A stretch of DNA of 64,000 bases. Source: Tetramitus jugosus. Lineage: Eukaryota > Protista > Heterolobosea. The translations under genes and the position numbers were made by a program. The stretch covers positions 62,001-126,000 of the forward strand of contig OW569386.1 of assembly GCA_937625935.1 (NCBI GenBank), given 5' to 3'. The stretch's first letter is position 1. Each line of letters opens with the position of its first letter. The notes under the pieces were generated by a model. The model was not told the DNA's origin and did no database searches. It saw nothing but the letters and a program-made list of their open reading frames with translations. This document shows, one piece after another, positions 8,776 to 15,710 of the stretch.

Positions 8776-8960
8776 AAATAAATACCAAAAATTGACTTCG
8801 AACCCATCCAGGTTATAATTAAGTGTTCATTGTTGCCTTTCGGAGGCAAGACTACCAAATCCTTCCACGTGAAAAGGCCACGAATTATCTATTTTCGAGG
8901 GAGAACAATCAAATACTCTTCTTCATCGATAGTAGATCGTAACAGAATCCAACCAATACA

Positions 8961-10970
8961 ATGACTGAAAAGACAATCAACGAAGTAGATAGACCATTAT
9001 CTACAATGGCTTCAAGTGATATACAAGTAAAATGTGAAGACCCAACTCCTCAATCTTTCAGCGATATCAACCACCCTAATTTTGTGCCCACTCCCATGAC
9101 TCCTCTCGATCAAGTGCTGAAGAGGATGCAGAAGGATACCCCCCCATTTGCTGATTTCCTTGGTAATCCAAACCATTTTCCTCTCACCCCAACCCCAACA
9201 ATGCTCGAACAATCCGCAGAATCATCTCTATTCGACAGAGGTCCAATTCAGAGTGAATTAGAAGCTGAAGCACAACGGGTGGATGATAATGAGCTTCATC
9301 GCTTAATTCAATCATTGCTGGAAGCAATCTCAGTGTATGAACGAGAGAATCCTTTGAACCAGGAAGTAAAAAATTTAATTGAGCAGTTAAGAACTCAAAT
9401 GGTTAATGCAGAAGATTCTCTAGTTTTATCCCGAGTTAACAGTCCCTGTGATTTGGACATTGAGAAAGAGGAACCTCGGAACAGTTCTGGTCTGGTTCGT
9501 GAACCTGATCGAACCGATACATTGGATGAATTGAGAAGAGAACAAATGCTACTAGAAATCAAAGTCAAGGATATGCTCGACAGACATAGAACTGGAGACA
9601 GTCAGAATGAAGAAGGCGAGAATAAATACATCCAGTCAACAAATGACTTGAATCCCCCGCAAGATTCAACTCATGTTCCAAAAGGAAATCGGATCTCTCT
9701 GATGATTGAACAACAACCGGAGCAAAAGTTGAAAGATAGCGTATTTTACAAAGAAAGTGTTCGAGAAATGATACCTCAAGTCATGTCCTCTCTGGATCGC
9801 GACTCCCTGGAGAAAGACTTTCCTATTCAACATAAAACGATTAGACAGGAAGAACAGAGAAGAATGTCGTTGGATCTGACATTGAGTGGCTATGATAAAT
9901 CTGGAGTTGATGTGTCAACCATCCAACTACTTCAAGATCGAGAAAGATGTGAATACATCAACACGATACTTAACGATCATTTTCCCTCTCTATACGAGTT
10001 GAAGAAAATGATATTAAATTGTGACATAGAGCTCCGGAGATATCTATCTGTGTTGAAAGATATCCTACCCACAGAACAGGAGGTAGATTATGCGGTTTGT
10101 TCTGTCTGTCACCTGAATCAAATTTCAGAACACTCGATGGGCTTATTTTTGGAGAAGGCAGAAACTAAAGCGGACCAATGGATGTTGATACTGCTCATGG
10201 AAGATGAAGCCACTCCCCATAAAGGGGCACCACAGGAAGCAATACCTATAACACAACAGGCGATCCGCCAAACAAAGCAACTTCGTCACCTTGTAGAAGC
10301 GTGGATCGGATATCACAGATTTCAGTGTCTGTATCCCCTGATTAAGGAACATATCACATGTCTCGAGGAGGCATGTATGGAAATGAAGAATAGTAAGAGT
10401 TTCTTCAAGTTTTTGGGAGTTGTGTTGGCCTTGATTAATTGCTTGTATTCCACTGGAGACAGAGAGCTCATATGGGGATTCCAAATCTCATGTCTGGGAA
10501 AATTGTTAGCAGTGAAGAACGGTGACGAATCAACCTGTCTATTGAACTATATTGACCAATTATGCTGTGAAAAGTATCCAGATTTAAAGGTGGACTCACT
10601 CTTATCTGAGTTGAGTCATGTTCCGAAAGCAGCCAATATTTCACTTGACCTACTTTCTCTCCAAATAGACGAAGTTCAGGACGATCTCCATCAACTAATT
10701 CAGTTCAGAAACGAACAGGTCTTGGAGTGCAACTTTCAGCTCTCCAAATCTTTATGTGCTGATGATAGTCTAAACGAAATGCAAGATCAGTTGGCCAAAG
10801 TTGAAGAGCGCTGGACAAATCTCCTGCAGAACATACGGAGTGTGAGAGAACTGTACTGCGAAAGGGAGTCGGACCAGATGAAAACTTTCCAATCAGTTTC
10901 GCAATTTCTTGCGTCCCTGCAAGCTGCGCACCACCAAAACTCGAGCTATCCATCAACAAATGGGGAATAA
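8961..10970 (+). CDS. Divergent formin FH2-domain protein
   Basis: SKSFFKFLGVVLALINCL...GFQISCLGKLLAVK...CLLNYI...YPDL resembles the FH2 post/coiled-coil region. Confidence 0.7.
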   Translation: MTEKTINEVDRPLSTMASSDIQVKCEDPTPQSFSDINHPNFVPTPMTPLDQVLKRMQKDTPPFADFLGNPNHFPLTPTPTMLEQSAESSLFDRGPIQSELEAEAQRVDDNELHRLIQSLLEAISVYERENPLNQEVKNLIEQLRTQMVNAEDSLVLSRVNSPCDLDIEKEEPRNSSGLVREPDRTDTLDELRREQMLLEIKVKDMLDRHRTGDSQNEEGENKYIQSTNDLNPPQDSTHVPKGNRISLMIEQQPEQKLKDSVFYKESVREMIPQVMSSLDRDSLEKDFPIQHKTIRQEEQRRMSLDLTLSGYDKSGVDVSTIQLLQDRERCEYINTILNDHFPSLYELKKMILNCDIELRRYLSVLKDILPTEQEVDYAVCSVCHLNQISEHSMGLFLEKAETKADQWMLILLMEDEATPHKGAPQEAIPITQQAIRQTKQLRHLVEAWIGYHRFQCLYPLIKEHITCLEEACMEMKNSKSFFKFLGVVLALINCLYSTGDRELIWGFQISCLGKLLAVKNGDESTCLLNYIDQLCCEKYPDLKVDSLLSELSHVPKAANISLDLLSLQIDEVQDDLHQLIQFRNEQVLECNFQLSKSLCADDSLNEMQDQLAKVEERWTNLLQNIRSVRELYCERESDQMKTFQSVSQFLASLQAAHHQNSSYPSTNGE

Positions 10971-11044
10971 AAATTCACTGAATTCGTTGAACCAGTCAAC
11001 CTTCGACATCTCGCTGACGTATCTCATGAAACTTCTCGCATGTT

Positions 11045-11059
11045 ACAAGGGGAGAATTG
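11045..11059 (+). promoter_or_regulatory. Conserved upstream element ACAAGGGGAGAATTG (paralog A)
   Basis: Exact 15-mer shared with 12479-12493 at a similar distance from the ATG (119 vs 128 bp). Confidence 0.45.
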
Positions 11060-11163
11060 GCTTGCGCAGCAAAACCCATCAGCTTTTAACGCGACACCCA
11101 ACCGCCAAAACTCTGCCAAAACATCAAAACAAACAAAACCAAAAACATCTGTATTTTTTAATA

Positions 11164-11838
11164 ATGAGAGCTACCATTATTCTTGCTGTTCTTGTGATCT
11201 TGGCTATCGCATCCCTTGCAACTGCTTACTCTCCAAGAGGACGCAACGTTCCACAGAGAAAGTACCGTGTCAACAGTGATAGAAGCATGCCACATCCTGT
11301 CAGAAGACCATTGGCTGACTTGTCAATCAGGAGACCAGACTGGACCACTACTTATCCAACTTTCCCAACAAGACAACCAGTCTTGTTCAGCGACAAGATG
11401 GTCTACGGCCCAGCTCCAAGATACAACAGAAGACAACCTGTTTACTTGAGCGACAGAACTCTTCCATACAACCCAATCTATACCACCTATCCAATCAGAA
11501 GACAAGACTTGTTGAGCGACTCTGAACTCTTGATCATCAGAAAGGACAGATTCGGCAACATTGTTGGAAGAAATATTGTTCACAATGATGAAGAAGAACA
11601 ATGGGGTGTCAGTGGTAACATTGGCTCTGGTGGTCAATGGAACGCTGGTGGATCTTACACTGGAAGAGTTGGCAACGGTGACTTGAAGGTTGGAGGAAAT
11701 GTTGGCAACGGTGGAAACTGGGGTGTCAATGCTGGATACTCTGGCAAGATTGGAAACTCTGGATCCTACAATGTCGGTGGCAACTACAACCGTGGTGGAA
11801 ACTGGGGAGTTGGTGCTAGCGCCTCTTTCAGATTCTAA
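11164..11838 (+). CDS. Secreted multi-peptide precursor with Gly-rich beta-hairpin C-terminal domain (paralog A, 224 aa)
   Basis: Signal peptide MRATIILAVLVILAIASLATA; repeated ...SD cassettes; DEEE linker; GGNWG repeats; close paralog at 12607; AATAAA downstream. Confidence 0.85.
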   Translation: MRATIILAVLVILAIASLATAYSPRGRNVPQRKYRVNSDRSMPHPVRRPLADLSIRRPDWTTTYPTFPTRQPVLFSDKMVYGPAPRYNRRQPVYLSDRTLPYNPIYTTYPIRRQDLLSDSELLIIRKDRFGNIVGRNIVHNDEEEQWGVSGNIGSGGQWNAGGSYTGRVGNGDLKVGGNVGNGGNWGVNAGYSGKIGNSGSYNVGGNYNRGGNWGVGASASFRF

Positions 11839-12478
11839 ATTGTGTCAAATGTTTGTCGTATTTTGAATAAACAAAGATACAACATGTCTCGCCAAAAGGT
11901 GTGCCTTTTTATTGTTCTCTGCAGTACGCAATAGTAAGTGAAGCTCATGTCGCCAGAAACTTTCTCAAGTCTCCAACAAACGATGGAGAAGGGCTTCTAA
12001 CAATGGGTCCTTGGAGTCTCTGAGATGGGAGAGCACAACTCAATCATGTGAACATGATTGGGCTCAGACATCTTCGTTCACAATGCGGATGGCTGAGATT
12101 GTGATGGTTTGGTGCATAGTATTGCTTCAAGTCAAAGTGACGTGCTTAGTGGATTCAGCCTGTTCTGATTACAGTCTGAATTCCTTCATGAAGCAGACAG
12201 CTATCATCTTCTCCAGGATTAGTCATCTTTAAAAAGAGTAATTGTACACTCATTGCAAAACAAATCCTTCCCAATATCTCCTTCAGTCACTCCTGTCTCT
12301 TCCCAATGAAGAATAACAACCAGATCTGGTTCTGTAAGGCTGGGTGGGGCGAATTCTGAGCTAGAACCCTATCAACTAACGGAGAATAAACAAAGCTCAA
12401 TCATTGGATTCTGGTCAGTCAACCTGCACTGCTTGTCATCGTCTTGTTCAAAAGTTTTTGGAAGCTTGGGGTGGTCTC

Positions 12479-12493
12479 ACAAGGGGAGAATTG
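12479..12493 (+). promoter_or_regulatory. Conserved upstream element ACAAGGGGAGAATTG (paralog B)
   Basis: Exact match to 11045-11059 within otherwise diverged flanks. Confidence 0.45.
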
Positions 12494-12606
12494 TCGAGCA
12501 GCGGGGACCCCACAAACATTTAAAAGTCGAACCAACTGACCCAAACATTCTGAAAAACATCTCAACTAAAACATAACCCAAAACCCTTGTACTTTACTCC
12601 TACACG

Positions 12607-13407
12607 ATGAGAGCTACTGTCATTCTCGCTGTTCTTGTAATCTTGGCTATCGCATCCCTTGCAACTGCTTACTCTCCAAGAGGACGTTATGCTCCACAAA
12701 GAAAGTACCGTGTCAACAGTGACAAGATGCCATACTTTGATGAACCAGATTGCATCTCTAAGCCACCTTCATTCAGAAAGCCAATCATCTTCAGTGATAG
12801 AATGATCCTCAATCCAAACTATCCAAGATCCAGAATCGCAAGAAGACAACCAGCCTTGTTGAGTGATAAGATGGTCTACAGCCCAGCTCCAAGATACAAC
12901 AGAAGACAACCTGTCTACTTGAGCGACAGAACTCTTCCATACAACCCAATCTACACCACTTATCCAATCAGAACTCTACCATACTTGTTGAGTGACTCTG
13001 AATTGATTGCACCAGTTGAATGGGAAGGTAGAAGAATTGGCAACAGATACAGATACATGACTCACGATGATGAAGAAGATGAAGAAGAGAAATGGGGTGT
13101 CAGTGGAAATGTTGGATCTGGTGGATGGAGTGCAGGTGGATCCTACTCTGGAAAGGTTGGCAACGGTAAGGCCAGCGTTAGTGGAAACGTTTCCAAGGGA
13201 GGAAACTGGGGTGCCAGTGGATCTTACTCTGGAAAGGTTGGTAATGGTAACTTGAGTGTTGGTGGCAACGTCTCCAAGGGTGGAAACTGGGGTGCCAATG
13301 CTGGATACTCTGGCAACATTGGTAAGTCTGGATCTTACAGTGTTGGTGGTAATGTTTCCAAGGGAGGAAACTGGGGAGTTGGTGCTAGCGCCTCTTTCAG
13401 ATTCTAA
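12607..13407 (+). CDS. Secreted multi-peptide precursor with Gly-rich beta-hairpin C-terminal domain (paralog B, 266 aa)
   Basis: Same architecture as paralog A with one extra 27-aa Gly-rich repeat; identical C-terminus GGNWGVGASASFRF. Confidence 0.88.
   Translation: MRATVILAVLVILAIASLATAYSPRGRYAPQRKYRVNSDKMPYFDEPDCISKPPSFRKPIIFSDRMILNPNYPRSRIARRQPALLSDKMVYSPAPRYNRRQPVYLSDRTLPYNPIYTTYPIRTLPYLLSDSELIAPVEWEGRRIGNRYRYMTHDDEEDEEEKWGVSGNVGSGGWSAGGSYSGKVGNGKASVSGNVSKGGNWGASGSYSGKVGNGNLSVGGNVSKGGNWGANAGYSGNIGKSGSYSVGGNVSKGGNWGVGASASFRF
13093..13404 (+). repeat. Intragenic ~81-bp (27-aa) tandem repeat encoding GGNWGxxGSYSGKVGNGxxSVGGNVSK
   Basis: Repeat visible in DNA and protein; the equivalent region in paralog A (11602-11835) is one unit shorter. 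Confidence 0.85.
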
Positions 13408-13633
13408 ATTGTGTCAAGTCGTGTTTGAATAAACGAAAATACAACTTTTCATACCCAATCACGCACCTTGTTTGTTGTCACAAAAATATTTTGAGGACTG
13501 TAGATTTTTGGCAGTTGGCGTCATCGTGAGGTTTTTTTTAGAACATGTTCAGATTGTACAGTTCAAGAGATGGCCAGATAAAAGCTGAAAGATCTTGCCC
13601 AAACAAAACCAACGAATCATAGCAAATAACAAC

Positions 13634-13837
13634 ATGCAAAGAAAGGGAAGAGTGGGTGGTGCACAAACTAACAAAACAAGAGATCGAGGCAGATGTCGAA
13701 AGAAGAACTGCTCCTGGTGCCATTCAAAACCAGCAACCAAGAGCGCCTGTAAAATCAAAGGCGAAAAGAACAAGGGTTTCTTGAGACAAAATATTCGTGA
13801 TATCGCAAGATTTGACCTTGACTTTTGCTTGGACTAA
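13634..13837 (+). CDS. Small basic Cys-containing hypothetical protein (67 aa)
   Basis: ATG after an A/C-rich leader; MQRKGRVGG...CRKKNCSWCH. Confidence 0.35.
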   Translation: MQRKGRVGGAQTNKTRDRGRCRKKNCSWCHSKPATKSACKIKGEKNKGFLRQNIRDIARFDLDFCLD

Positions 13838-14201
13838 AGTCAGTGAGCTCCTGACTAAAAATTTTTTCAATCGGAACATCTTTAATGCTGTGTGGCCTGT
13901 AGGATCAGATCTATTCTCTCTACGGTGCTTGTGCTGTTCGTTTACTATTTTCGTTGCTGTAGTCTCCAGAAGGAAAAACCTCAACAATGGGCCATCGTTA
14001 TGAAACCATGGCATCTCATAAAATTACCTCGCTTTCTGAAACTCTCATTTGAGTCTCTTAATGATGTTTGCGTCACTGTTTTTAACTTAACGCCATCGAT
14101 CTGGTTGGTTTTGTTGGTATTCCCACCATTCCCGCGCCATCGGTCCGAACTTGCTCCATTGAACATGAATCTTCGCACAACCTGAAAGCCAAACAAAATC
14201 A

Positions 14202-15710
14202 ATGTTCAAACTCGCACAACTACAAAAGCCAATCATCACAACAACCACAACAGTCATCATCAGACAAAGAACCAACAACGTCATATTCTTCACCTACCAT
14301 CAACAACTCTTACACAACATCATGAATCACATTTCACTCATCAACGTTGGCAACAAGACCTATCGCAAACACAATCACAACAACCTTAACAACAACCTTA
14401 ACAAGAACCGTAACAACAATTGCAATCATGATCAAACAACAGAAGTAGATGAAGAGAATAAAAACTATGAAGATGAACCATACTTGACATGCACAATCAT
14501 GGACTCTCGAAGCACTTTCCTATCATCATCATCATCATCATCATCAATGGTTGCTACTGCAGCTGAGACTGATGATGATCAATATGATGATAATGATACT
14601 ACTCAACAGAGTGAAATTACCACTGTTACCACAACTACAACTACTTCTACTACTGCTGCAGTTTCTGCTAGTGATAAGAATAATGATAGTAGTGTCAGTG
14701 AATTCAAGTTCAAGGATTCTATCGAAGTCGATTCATCCATGGTTCGTCATCTCATTGGCTACAAGTATCAAACAATCAACTCGATTATGAAAAAGTCCAA
14801 TACTCGAATCACTGTATCATCATCTGCTGCACCATCTATGAATACGAATACTACTAATAACAACAATCAACAACATCAACATCAACAACATCATAGAAAG
14901 AGACATCATGTGAAGGAACCCGTGTGGATTCATGCCAATGAGTTGAGTGATATCGAATTGGCAAAGAATGAAATACTTCAATTGATTGAAAGCAAGTTAC
15001 CATTCACTCATTTTCTGAGTTTGCATCTAGTGAATGATCCAACAGTGCACTCCAAGCTCTCTCAGTTCTTTGATGACTTGAAGGTGACTTTTCCATCGAT
15101 TCACAGCACAGTGTACATTTCTCCCAGTCGATTCCACTTTACGATACAAATGCTTCGATTGTCCAATCAGGACAAGATTGATCAGATGAAACAATTGTTG
15201 AATGATGAGATTCAACCCATTATCAATGAACTGTTTTCGAACAATGGTTTTGGTAGTAGTGGTATTGATGCAGTGGAGTTTGATCGATTGGACACGTTTA
15301 GAGACAGACAACACACAAAGTTGTCTCATACGTCTGTTGTGTTCCTTAAGCCAAAGACCAATACAACGTACGATCGTATCATGGAGATGGGCAACAGAAT
15401 CAAGTCTGTCCTGTTAAAGTACAAGTTGATCAATCAAAAGGAATCTCAAGAGTCATTGGTGTTGCACGCCACGGTCATGAACGCAAAGTATGGCAATATC
15501 AAGGGATTTGATGCCGAACAGTTGTTGAACCAGTTTGGAACAATGACTGCTCTCGAATCCAAACTTGGTAACGACTTTAAGGTTCCTCTCACAACTCTAG
15601 AACTGTCAAAGCTCGTACCAAGCAAGACAGATGTGCGAGTCAATGGATTCTATGCAGCGGAAGCAATCATCCAATTCCCTCCACAGCAACAGCAACAGCA
15701 ACAGCAATAA
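14202..15710 (+). CDS. ASCC1: ASCC1-like protein (KH domain + 2H phosphoesterase/AKAP7-like domain)
   Basis: KH: VRHLIGYKYQTINSIMKKSNTRITV. PFTHFLS, followed by two HxT motifs (HFT, HAT). Start codon uncertain. Confidence 0.8.
   Translation: MFKLAQLQKPIITTTTTVIIRQRTNNVIFFTYHQQLLHNIMNHISLINVGNKTYRKHNHNNLNNNLNKNRNNNCNHDQTTEVDEENKNYEDEPYLTCTIMDSRSTFLSSSSSSSSMVATAAETDDDQYDDNDTTQQSEITTVTTTTTTSTTAAVSASDKNNDSSVSEFKFKDSIEVDSSMVRHLIGYKYQTINSIMKKSNTRITVSSSAAPSMNTNTTNNNNQQHQHQQHHRKRHHVKEPVWIHANELSDIELAKNEILQLIESKLPFTHFLSLHLVNDPTVHSKLSQFFDDLKVTFPSIHSTVYISPSRFHFTIQMLRLSNQDKIDQMKQLLNDEIQPIINELFSNNGFGSSGIDAVEFDRLDTFRDRQHTKLSHTSVVFLKPKTNTTYDRIMEMGNRIKSVLLKYKLINQKESQESLVLHATVMNAKYGNIKGFDAEQLLNQFGTMTALESKLGNDFKVPLTTLELSKLVPSKTDVRVNGFYAAEAIIQFPPQQQQQQQQ

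Follow-up and report, generated by a model that had tools for sequence, protein, structure and literature searches.

Results

Two Tandem Genes Encode Secreted Cassette Proteins

We analyzed a 64,000-nucleotide stretch of contig OW569386.1 of Tetramitus jugosus (the window, in whose numbering positions are given), which carries two adjacent genes, A and B, whose open reading frames (ORFs) are intact, lie in tandem on the + strand, and are 72% identical (Table 1). They are highly transcribed and encode secretory-pathway proteins of exchangeable cassettes. A previous, sequence-only reading had described two intronless paralogs with a common layout, consisting of a 21-residue signal peptide, five to six Pro/Arg/Tyr-rich cassettes ending mostly in (L/F/N)SD, and a Cys-free, cationic, Gly-rich domain of 78 or 104 residues, and this description is accurate, apart from the corrections given below. 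RNA contigs over both genes show no intron joints. By inspection, the leaders contain a 12-residue hydrophobic stretch (mean Kyte-Doolittle value 3.6) and end with ATA-Y at residue 21/22. Five cassettes per gene close with a hydrophobic residue or Asn followed by SD or AD, compared with 0.2–0.3 expected from shuffled sequences, none of 20,000 of which reached five; a sixth cassette extends to the acidic linker. The cassettes are cationic; their Pro content is only 11–27%, and the one Cys of gene B lies in cassette 2. PTFP occurs in cassette 3 and PYNP in cassette 5 of gene A. The terminal domains have the sizes given, lack Cys, and contain 31–33% Gly, with net charges of +4 in A and +8 in B, a cationic character that is not family-wide (see below). 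We take the ATG at 11164 as the start of gene A because RNA contigs begin near 11140, although the frame is open further upstream.

Contig depth in run X4 is ~12,000 over the Gly-rich domain of gene A, ~4,800 over that of gene B, and 59 over a neighboring formin gene, a difference of ~80–200-fold, with the reservations that contig depth is a rough measure and that runs were picked for containing the A/B stretch. This run is RNA-like, with poly(A) tails at 8799 and 10991 and no cover between genes. The corresponding values in two soil metatranscriptomes are ~1,400–2,800 for gene A, 150–330 for gene B, and 2–5 for formin; the neighboring genes occur in the same RNA runs and serve as the comparison. 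When the 43 ORFs of the window are ranked by C-ending codons and AAG, gene B comes first and the TCTP gene second, in agreement with the codon likeness to TCTP noted previously.

Table 1. Coordinates of features of genes A and B and of two paralogs
Feature	Position	Strand	Basis or remarks
Gene A, 224-residue secreted multi-cassette precursor	11164..11838	+	ORF call; transcribed
Gene A signal peptide, 21 residues	11164..11226	+	Predicted by inspection; hydrophobic core
Gene A, six cationic cassettes	11227..11583	+	Spacers SD, AD, or SDSE
Gene A predicted mature peptides	11227-11274, 11281-11313, 11320-11388, 11395-11448, 11455-11514, 11527-11583	+	11-23 residues, net +2 to +5
Gene A acidic linker	11584..11601	+	Sequence composition; acidic run and aromatic residue before hairpins
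Gene A Gly/Asn/aromatic domain, 78 residues	11602..11835	+	Three predicted amphipathic beta-hairpins; FRF end; isoelectric point 10.0
15-bp motif upstream of gene A	11045..11059	+	Upstream alignment, exact match to gene B copy; candidate regulatory element
Gene B, 266-residue paralog	12607..13407	+	ORF call; transcribed
Gene B signal peptide, 21 residues	12607..12669	+	Predicted by inspection
Gene B, six cationic cassettes	12670..13065	+	Cassette analysis
Gene B predicted peptides	12670-12717, 12724-12792, 12799-12861, 12868-12921, 12928-12990, 13003-13065	+	16-23 residues, net +1 to +5
Gene B acidic linker	13066..13092	+	Sequence composition
Gene B Gly/Asn/aromatic domain, 104 residues	13093..13404	+	Four predicted beta-hairpins, 27-28-residue period; FRF end; isoelectric point 10.2
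15-bp motif upstream of gene B, second copy	12479..12493	+	Upstream alignment
Paralogs D and E	L005:1498-2763 and L006:859-1848	minus (L005)	CX3C-Xn-CX3C piece at start, then free near-neutral hairpins

Spacers Point to Stepwise Proteolysis

Of 63 cassettes in 13 proteins of the family, 57 are cationic, and the median length is 22 residues. The family spacers are runs of (S/A)(D/E) dipeptides (SD, AD, SDAEAE, SDSDSDSD, and similar). A looser spacer definition gives 14 spacers of at least three residues that end at Lys or Arg, of which 13 have an even number of residues (9 of the 10 distinct spacers), compared with 2 of 12 in the control; here, the acid takes the second place of the pair in 32 of 36 cases and the first place in 3 of 37. 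Lys or Arg stands directly behind the spacer at 23 of 53 junctions, including 7 of the 10 from the window, where 16% would be expected (p 3e-6). The protease cathepsin C strips dipeptides up to a stop point and disfavors N-terminal Arg or Lys (PMC11337848), and four genes in the genome contain its exclusion domain above the Pfam cut-off (contigs C28, C39, C15, and C5). The even spacer length and the basic residue behind it fit a cut after the hydrophobic residue, followed by trimming of the cathepsin C type. A secreted precursor on contig C20 (near 364,200–365,480; L043:781-2049) contains ten cationic amphipathic helices with the same spacers, and since its last helix reaches the stop codon without a spacer, we place the cut before SD. 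The same peptides would also result if the cut lay behind the last acid and dipeptides were trimmed from the C-terminus. On these grounds, the A and B precursors are very probably processed; computed masses of the predicted gene A peptides include 2,208.6 and 2,493.9 Da.

Two other views of the cassettes should be considered here. The proteins could act whole, as repetitive secreted proteins in which SD marks phosphorylation or glycosylation sites. Kinases can target a Ser that precedes acidic residues, but this view fails to predict the even, in-register spacers, the Lys or Arg directly behind them, and the spacer-free terminal cassette, and we find it hardly credible. Alternatively, the released peptides could be signals (pheromones, density signals, or cues for encystment or excystment), comparable to those from yeast alpha-factor and neuropeptide precursors with dipeptide spacers. 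Multi-copy precursors with acidic dipeptide spacers are indeed typical of signaling peptides, and the cassettes vary between species; however, they are also diverse within one gene, lytic-looking helices use the same spacers, a membrane-type beta domain is attached, and the transcript depth is far beyond the usual need of signals, leaving a signaling role improbable.

Contig C33 encodes a 129-residue secreted protein (L057:1137-1598, minus) with four hydrophobic-plus-SD/SE junctions and two-Cys cassettes and without the Gly-rich domain; judged from its sequence, it is another member of the spacer system.

The Gly-Rich Domain Is Predicted to Form an Antiparallel Meander

Strands of the predicted hairpins follow a strict hydrophobic alternation with a period of two residues (73 and 64 strands): among the 73 Trp-led strands, hydrophobic residues account for 95–100% at positions 1, 3, and 7 and for 0–3% at even positions. 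The alignment-based model of the paralog C domain (16 rows) has eight antiparallel strands and a predicted local distance difference test score (pLDDT) of 73, exceeding 80 over the last 55 residues. Its best structural matches are walls of transmembrane barrels (SusC transporter, Z 9.2; Mdm10, 8.5; Omp33, 8.4; TamA, 8.2), and VDAC reaches a TM-score of 0.65–0.70 with a non-significant E-value. The single-sequence model of the gene B domain is a beta-solenoid (pLDDT 64) whose neighbors include curli CsgA as the nearest (Z 7.2, root mean square deviation 8.3), SufBD, and FapC (Z 5.4). The two models come from different paralogs and are of single chains.

The solenoid bears on a different function, in which the Gly/Asn/aromatic repeats form a secreted functional amyloid or coat (cyst wall, glycocalyx, or adhesion) and the pro-cassettes maintain solubility until they are cut off; the sequence-only reading had named cyst-wall or extracellular structural proteins as its alternative. 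CsgA and FapC are among the top matches of the solenoid, the in-register Trp, Asn, and Tyr repeats suit stacking, expression is very high, and the free single hairpins of paralogs D and E could polymerize. Yet the low pLDDT and the large deviation from CsgA compare poorly with the higher confidence of the 16-sequence meander, the domain lacks Cys and any chitin-binding module, and this view would leave unexplained why, in relatives, the domain is joined with P[FY]NP peptides and with cationic helices. We prefer the antiparallel meander over the solenoid, and the structural alternative is weakened to an unlikely one.

Sequence comparisons gave little. Searches of the window proteins and domains against Pfam, PHROGs, PDB sequences, and phage genomes (tblastn) returned nothing significant, nor did the window proteins or family domains match curli or Fap sequences. 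Of the profiles that the sequence-only reading had put forward, Attacin_N and Attacin_C had no match up to E 10 among the window proteins and 16 domains of the family, and neither had Gloverin; for outer membrane proteins (OMPs), there were weak matches of family domains mostly to barrel families (Porin_4, Porin_3, YadA_anchor, and Alginate_exp), all under the cut-off. The nearest named language-model clusters of the Atlas are Attacin_C and Gloverin at 0.82–0.87, scores that, being below 0.9, are leads only, and the Atlas shape search returned zero matches. Phage hypothetical proteins (Atlas 0.87–0.90) were dismissed as relatives, finding no support from PHROGs or tblastn.

The consensus beta-signal of OMPs is an amphipathic C-terminal strand with an aromatic end, an aromatic residue at -3, and Gly at -6. 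The last residue is Phe in 14 of 17 domains; A and B have Phe at -1 and -3 and Ser at -6, and Gly is mostly found at -8. The C-terminus of the domain thus appears to resemble the beta-signal only in part.

An Undescribed Family in This and Related Genomes

In the assembly of 26.35 Mb (56 contigs), the family comprises five genes: A, B, and paralogs C, D, and E. Paralog C encodes ten Pro/Arg/Trp cassettes followed by a four-hairpin domain; the 15-bp motif of genes A and B is absent upstream of it. Paralogs D and E begin with a four-Cys pro-piece, which we take to resemble plant alpha-hairpinins, continue with single 20-residue hairpins (9 in D, 7 in E), each preceded by an acidic spacer, and end in two hairpins.

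The survey of family size that the sequence-only reading had suggested also yielded, from large protein collections, 14 homolog clusters and one marine fragment related to A and B, none of them functionally named, and no insect proteins among the matches. The homologs sit on gene-dense eukaryotic contigs, and two neighbors that were tested have counterparts in this genome with 66% and 53% identity, which points to related protists as the likely hosts. One other assembly carries at least four members, and a contig of another organism contains a tandem of four secreted cassette genes (L049:716-5782), two with Cys and two with a Gly-rich end; a metagenome scan for the family returned only a near-identical copy of paralog C. 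Family-wide, the terminal domain comprises 1 to 4 hairpins, its net charge ranges from 0 to +10, and its last residue is aromatic in almost every case; in nearly all members an acidic run and an aromatic residue precede the hairpin unit. As far as sequence can tell, A and B belong to an undescribed protein family, and the literature on Tetramitus or Heterolobosea, of which our coverage was partial, gave no account of such peptides, as previously supposed.

Some candidates were set aside. A correspondence between the charges of linker and domain is seen only in A and B; in paralog C, about nine acids precede a domain with a net charge of +1. P0010 is a spurious repeat match, and P0026 (JGI 3300050046; 109 residues, two C-terminal Gly/Asn/Trp hairpins, beside a caspase-like Peptidase_C14 gene) is too weak at an E-value of 0.06. 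Homolog P0002 is flanked by ORFs that by eye resemble a papain-type protease and an Xaa-Pro aminopeptidase (L037:1-477, 1758-2360), which may be chance.

Some Cassettes Resemble Antimicrobial Peptides

In P0005 and P0017, the Gly-rich domain of the A/B family is fused to 29-residue cationic amphipathic helices homologous to those of the contig C20 precursor, which indicates that cassettes are swapped among precursors. Likeness to insect peptides was judged by eye and by Pfam. Among 3,160 family residues, the motif P[FY]NP is present 11 times, with one copy in A and one in B, whereas 15,890 control residues contain none. It is the core common to metchnikowin, abaecin, lebocin, and LSer-PRP3/4, with PTFP in abaecin (PMC11678341, Table 3), and STGPYNP recurs in LSer-PRP4 and in the first cassette of each of the homologs P0004 and P0009. 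For three Pro cassettes of homologs, the sole Pfam match is Metchnikowin (E 0.04–0.12; best 14.5 bits against a cut-off of 25). Such short, low-complexity motifs cannot tell descent from convergence. Scans of the own genome with the Attacin_C, Metchnikowin, and Abaecin profiles gave zero candidates, though they are weak as negatives.

Metchnikowin, to which the motifs come closest, is antifungal, and T. jugosus CCAP 1588/3C is a soil amoeboflagellate that feeds on bacteria, fungi, and protists (PMC11106597). One may therefore consider weapons directed against eukaryotes (fungal prey, rival protists, or small predators), or else digestive aids that loosen envelopes without killing; the sheet model also fits the walls of VDAC and Tom40. 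The abaecin, lebocin, and attacin analogs are mainly antibacterial, however, and the cationic charge is suited to bacterial surfaces, and we give these options little credence.

Neighboring Features

The A/B duplication takes in ~120 bases of upstream DNA, and the pair has the formin-like gene on one side and a KH plus 2'-5' ligase-like gene on the other. The formin gene (FH2 domain; 8961-10970) produces an mRNA that stops at 10991, ~150 bases ahead of the gene A transcript. Downstream, 13620-14010 is transcribed in three RNA runs and shows single-base indels between strains and no convincing ORF; it is perhaps a non-coding RNA or a long untranslated region, and Rfam gave no match within 11800-14250.

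Discussion

What is the function of these precursors? The processing signals, the swapped cassettes that resemble antimicrobial peptides (AMPs), the predicted fold similar to porin walls, the Atlas leads, and the very high transcript depth suggest, by analogy, that the products of A and B likely have an antimicrobial role, and the diet of the host, which eats bacteria and fungi, counts in the same direction (PMC11106597). As a full explanation, antimicrobial multi-peptide precursors of a bacterivorous amoeba probably account best for the observations. We propose the following model. The precursor would enter an acidic secretory or lysosomal compartment, where an endoprotease would cut each cassette behind its hydrophobic end, and a cathepsin C-type dipeptidyl aminopeptidase would strip (S/A)(D/E) pairs until Lys or Arg is reached, yielding cationic Pro/Arg/Tyr peptides of 11–23 residues and, once the acidic linker is removed, the free Gly-rich domain. 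As an amphipathic beta-meander, this domain may oligomerize in the envelopes of microbes that are engulfed or close by, forming a barrel-like pore or lesion. The breach would then admit the Pro-rich peptides to targets inside the cell, for example DnaK or the ribosome, by analogy to hymenoptaecin and abaecin: bumblebee abaecin alone is inactive and reaches DnaK after hymenoptaecin breaches the membrane (PMC4426631). A single gene would deliver breacher and payload at a fixed ratio; we advance this synergy of pore and payload only tentatively.

Several observations weigh against an antimicrobial function. AMP families gave no significant sequence match, and the window cassettes have zero Pfam matches and are less Pro-rich than many insect peptides. 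RR pairs inside some of these cassettes may be cut as well. In paralogs D and E, the free hairpins have a near-neutral charge, which is unusual for membrane-attacking AMPs. Foldseek found nothing at E 0.001 with the paralog C model, curved antiparallel sheets in general match barrel walls, and the gene B domain on its own was modeled as a curli-like solenoid. The limits of the Atlas scores and of the depth figures given above belong here as well.

How does the system relate to known ones? For one fly attacin, a porin-like sheet has been modeled and damage to outer membranes demonstrated (PMC10690985); here, the likeness in fold depends on the alignment model of paralog C, the gene B domain alone giving a low-confidence solenoid. 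With the attacins, diptericins, hymenoptaecins, and gloverins (PF03769, PF03768, PF10793), A and B share a signal peptide, a pro-piece, and a Cys-free, Gly-rich mature domain. In contrast, there is no detectable sequence homology, the family unit is a hairpin of 22–28 residues in 1 to 4 copies or alone between acidic spacers, the domain follows an acidic run and not the RR or RxxR boundary of insects, and the host is a discoban protist. Since neither a profile match nor dibasic processing was found, A and B would work like attacin without being a member of its family; the attacin-like system of the sequence-only reading holds as an analogy and the most likely function, but not as family membership.

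Ant and Nasonia hymenoptaecins are likewise multi-peptide precursors, with RR and EAEP sites (PMC3415428). Insect proline-rich AMPs, including the apidaecin type (metchnikowin PF08105, abaecin PF08026, lebocin, and LSer-PRP3/4), resemble A and B in their tandem short cationic Pro/Arg peptides, dipeptide spacers, and P[FY]NP and PTFP motifs. They differ in using RR plus EAEP (X-Ala/Pro) where the spacers here are X-Asp or X-Glu after Phe, Leu, Tyr, or Met; the low Pro content in the window, Pfam scores below gathering (PF08105, PF08026, and apidaecin), and the presence of payload and putative pore-former in one chain further set A and B apart.

Other secreted or membrane proteins share single traits. 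In bacterial OMP barrels and YadA-type anchors, as here, the strands are amphipathic, with aromatic residues at their ends and at the C-terminus; with 2–8 short strands, however, the present domains would need to oligomerize to form a barrel, their Pfam matches are below the cut-off, and in these eukaryotic genes they follow a signal peptide and the peptide cassettes. Curli CsgA and FapC are secreted proteins with Gly/Asn-rich repeats of ~23 residues, and the single-sequence model is a solenoid; unlike them, the A/B family has one aromatic and aliphatic strand face, and its better-supported model is antiparallel. The Ser-Gln-Asn-Gln pattern of curli repeats is lacking in the family domain. The antibacterial effectors known from amoebae are for the most part lysozymes and pore-formers of the saposin-like type, and killing in protist phagosomes is only partly explained; naegleriapores derive from multi-peptide precursors. 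The saposin-like proteins are helical, with six-Cys domains, whereas the A/B family is linear, Cys-free, and predicted to be all beta. Common to both is the setting in a bacterivorous amoeba, amoebapores, naegleriapores, and Dictyostelium Apl being antibacterial pore-formers (PMC11542183, PMC5890168).

It is even conceivable, though we regard it as rather unlikely, that a discoban amoeba shares the two-part kit of insects, a Gly-rich hairpin breacher and P[FY]NP peptides, through ancient descent, gene exchange, or convergence toward shared bacterial targets, and that the OMP-like hairpin end may use or jam the beta-barrel assembly machinery (BAM) of the prey.

If the antimicrobial function is confirmed, linear Pro-rich peptides and an attacin-like beta effector, both deemed insect specialities, would be found in a lineage whose divergence from animals lies close to the root of the eukaryotes. 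The processing rule predicts exact peptide masses and could be used for mining other protist genomes. The minimal 20-residue hairpin, free or in 1–4 copies, would offer a simple model for attacin-type action on outer membranes. The genes would also provide short, makeable leads against Gram-negative bacteria. Given their abundance in soil metatranscriptomes, these genes may shape grazing on soil bacteria.

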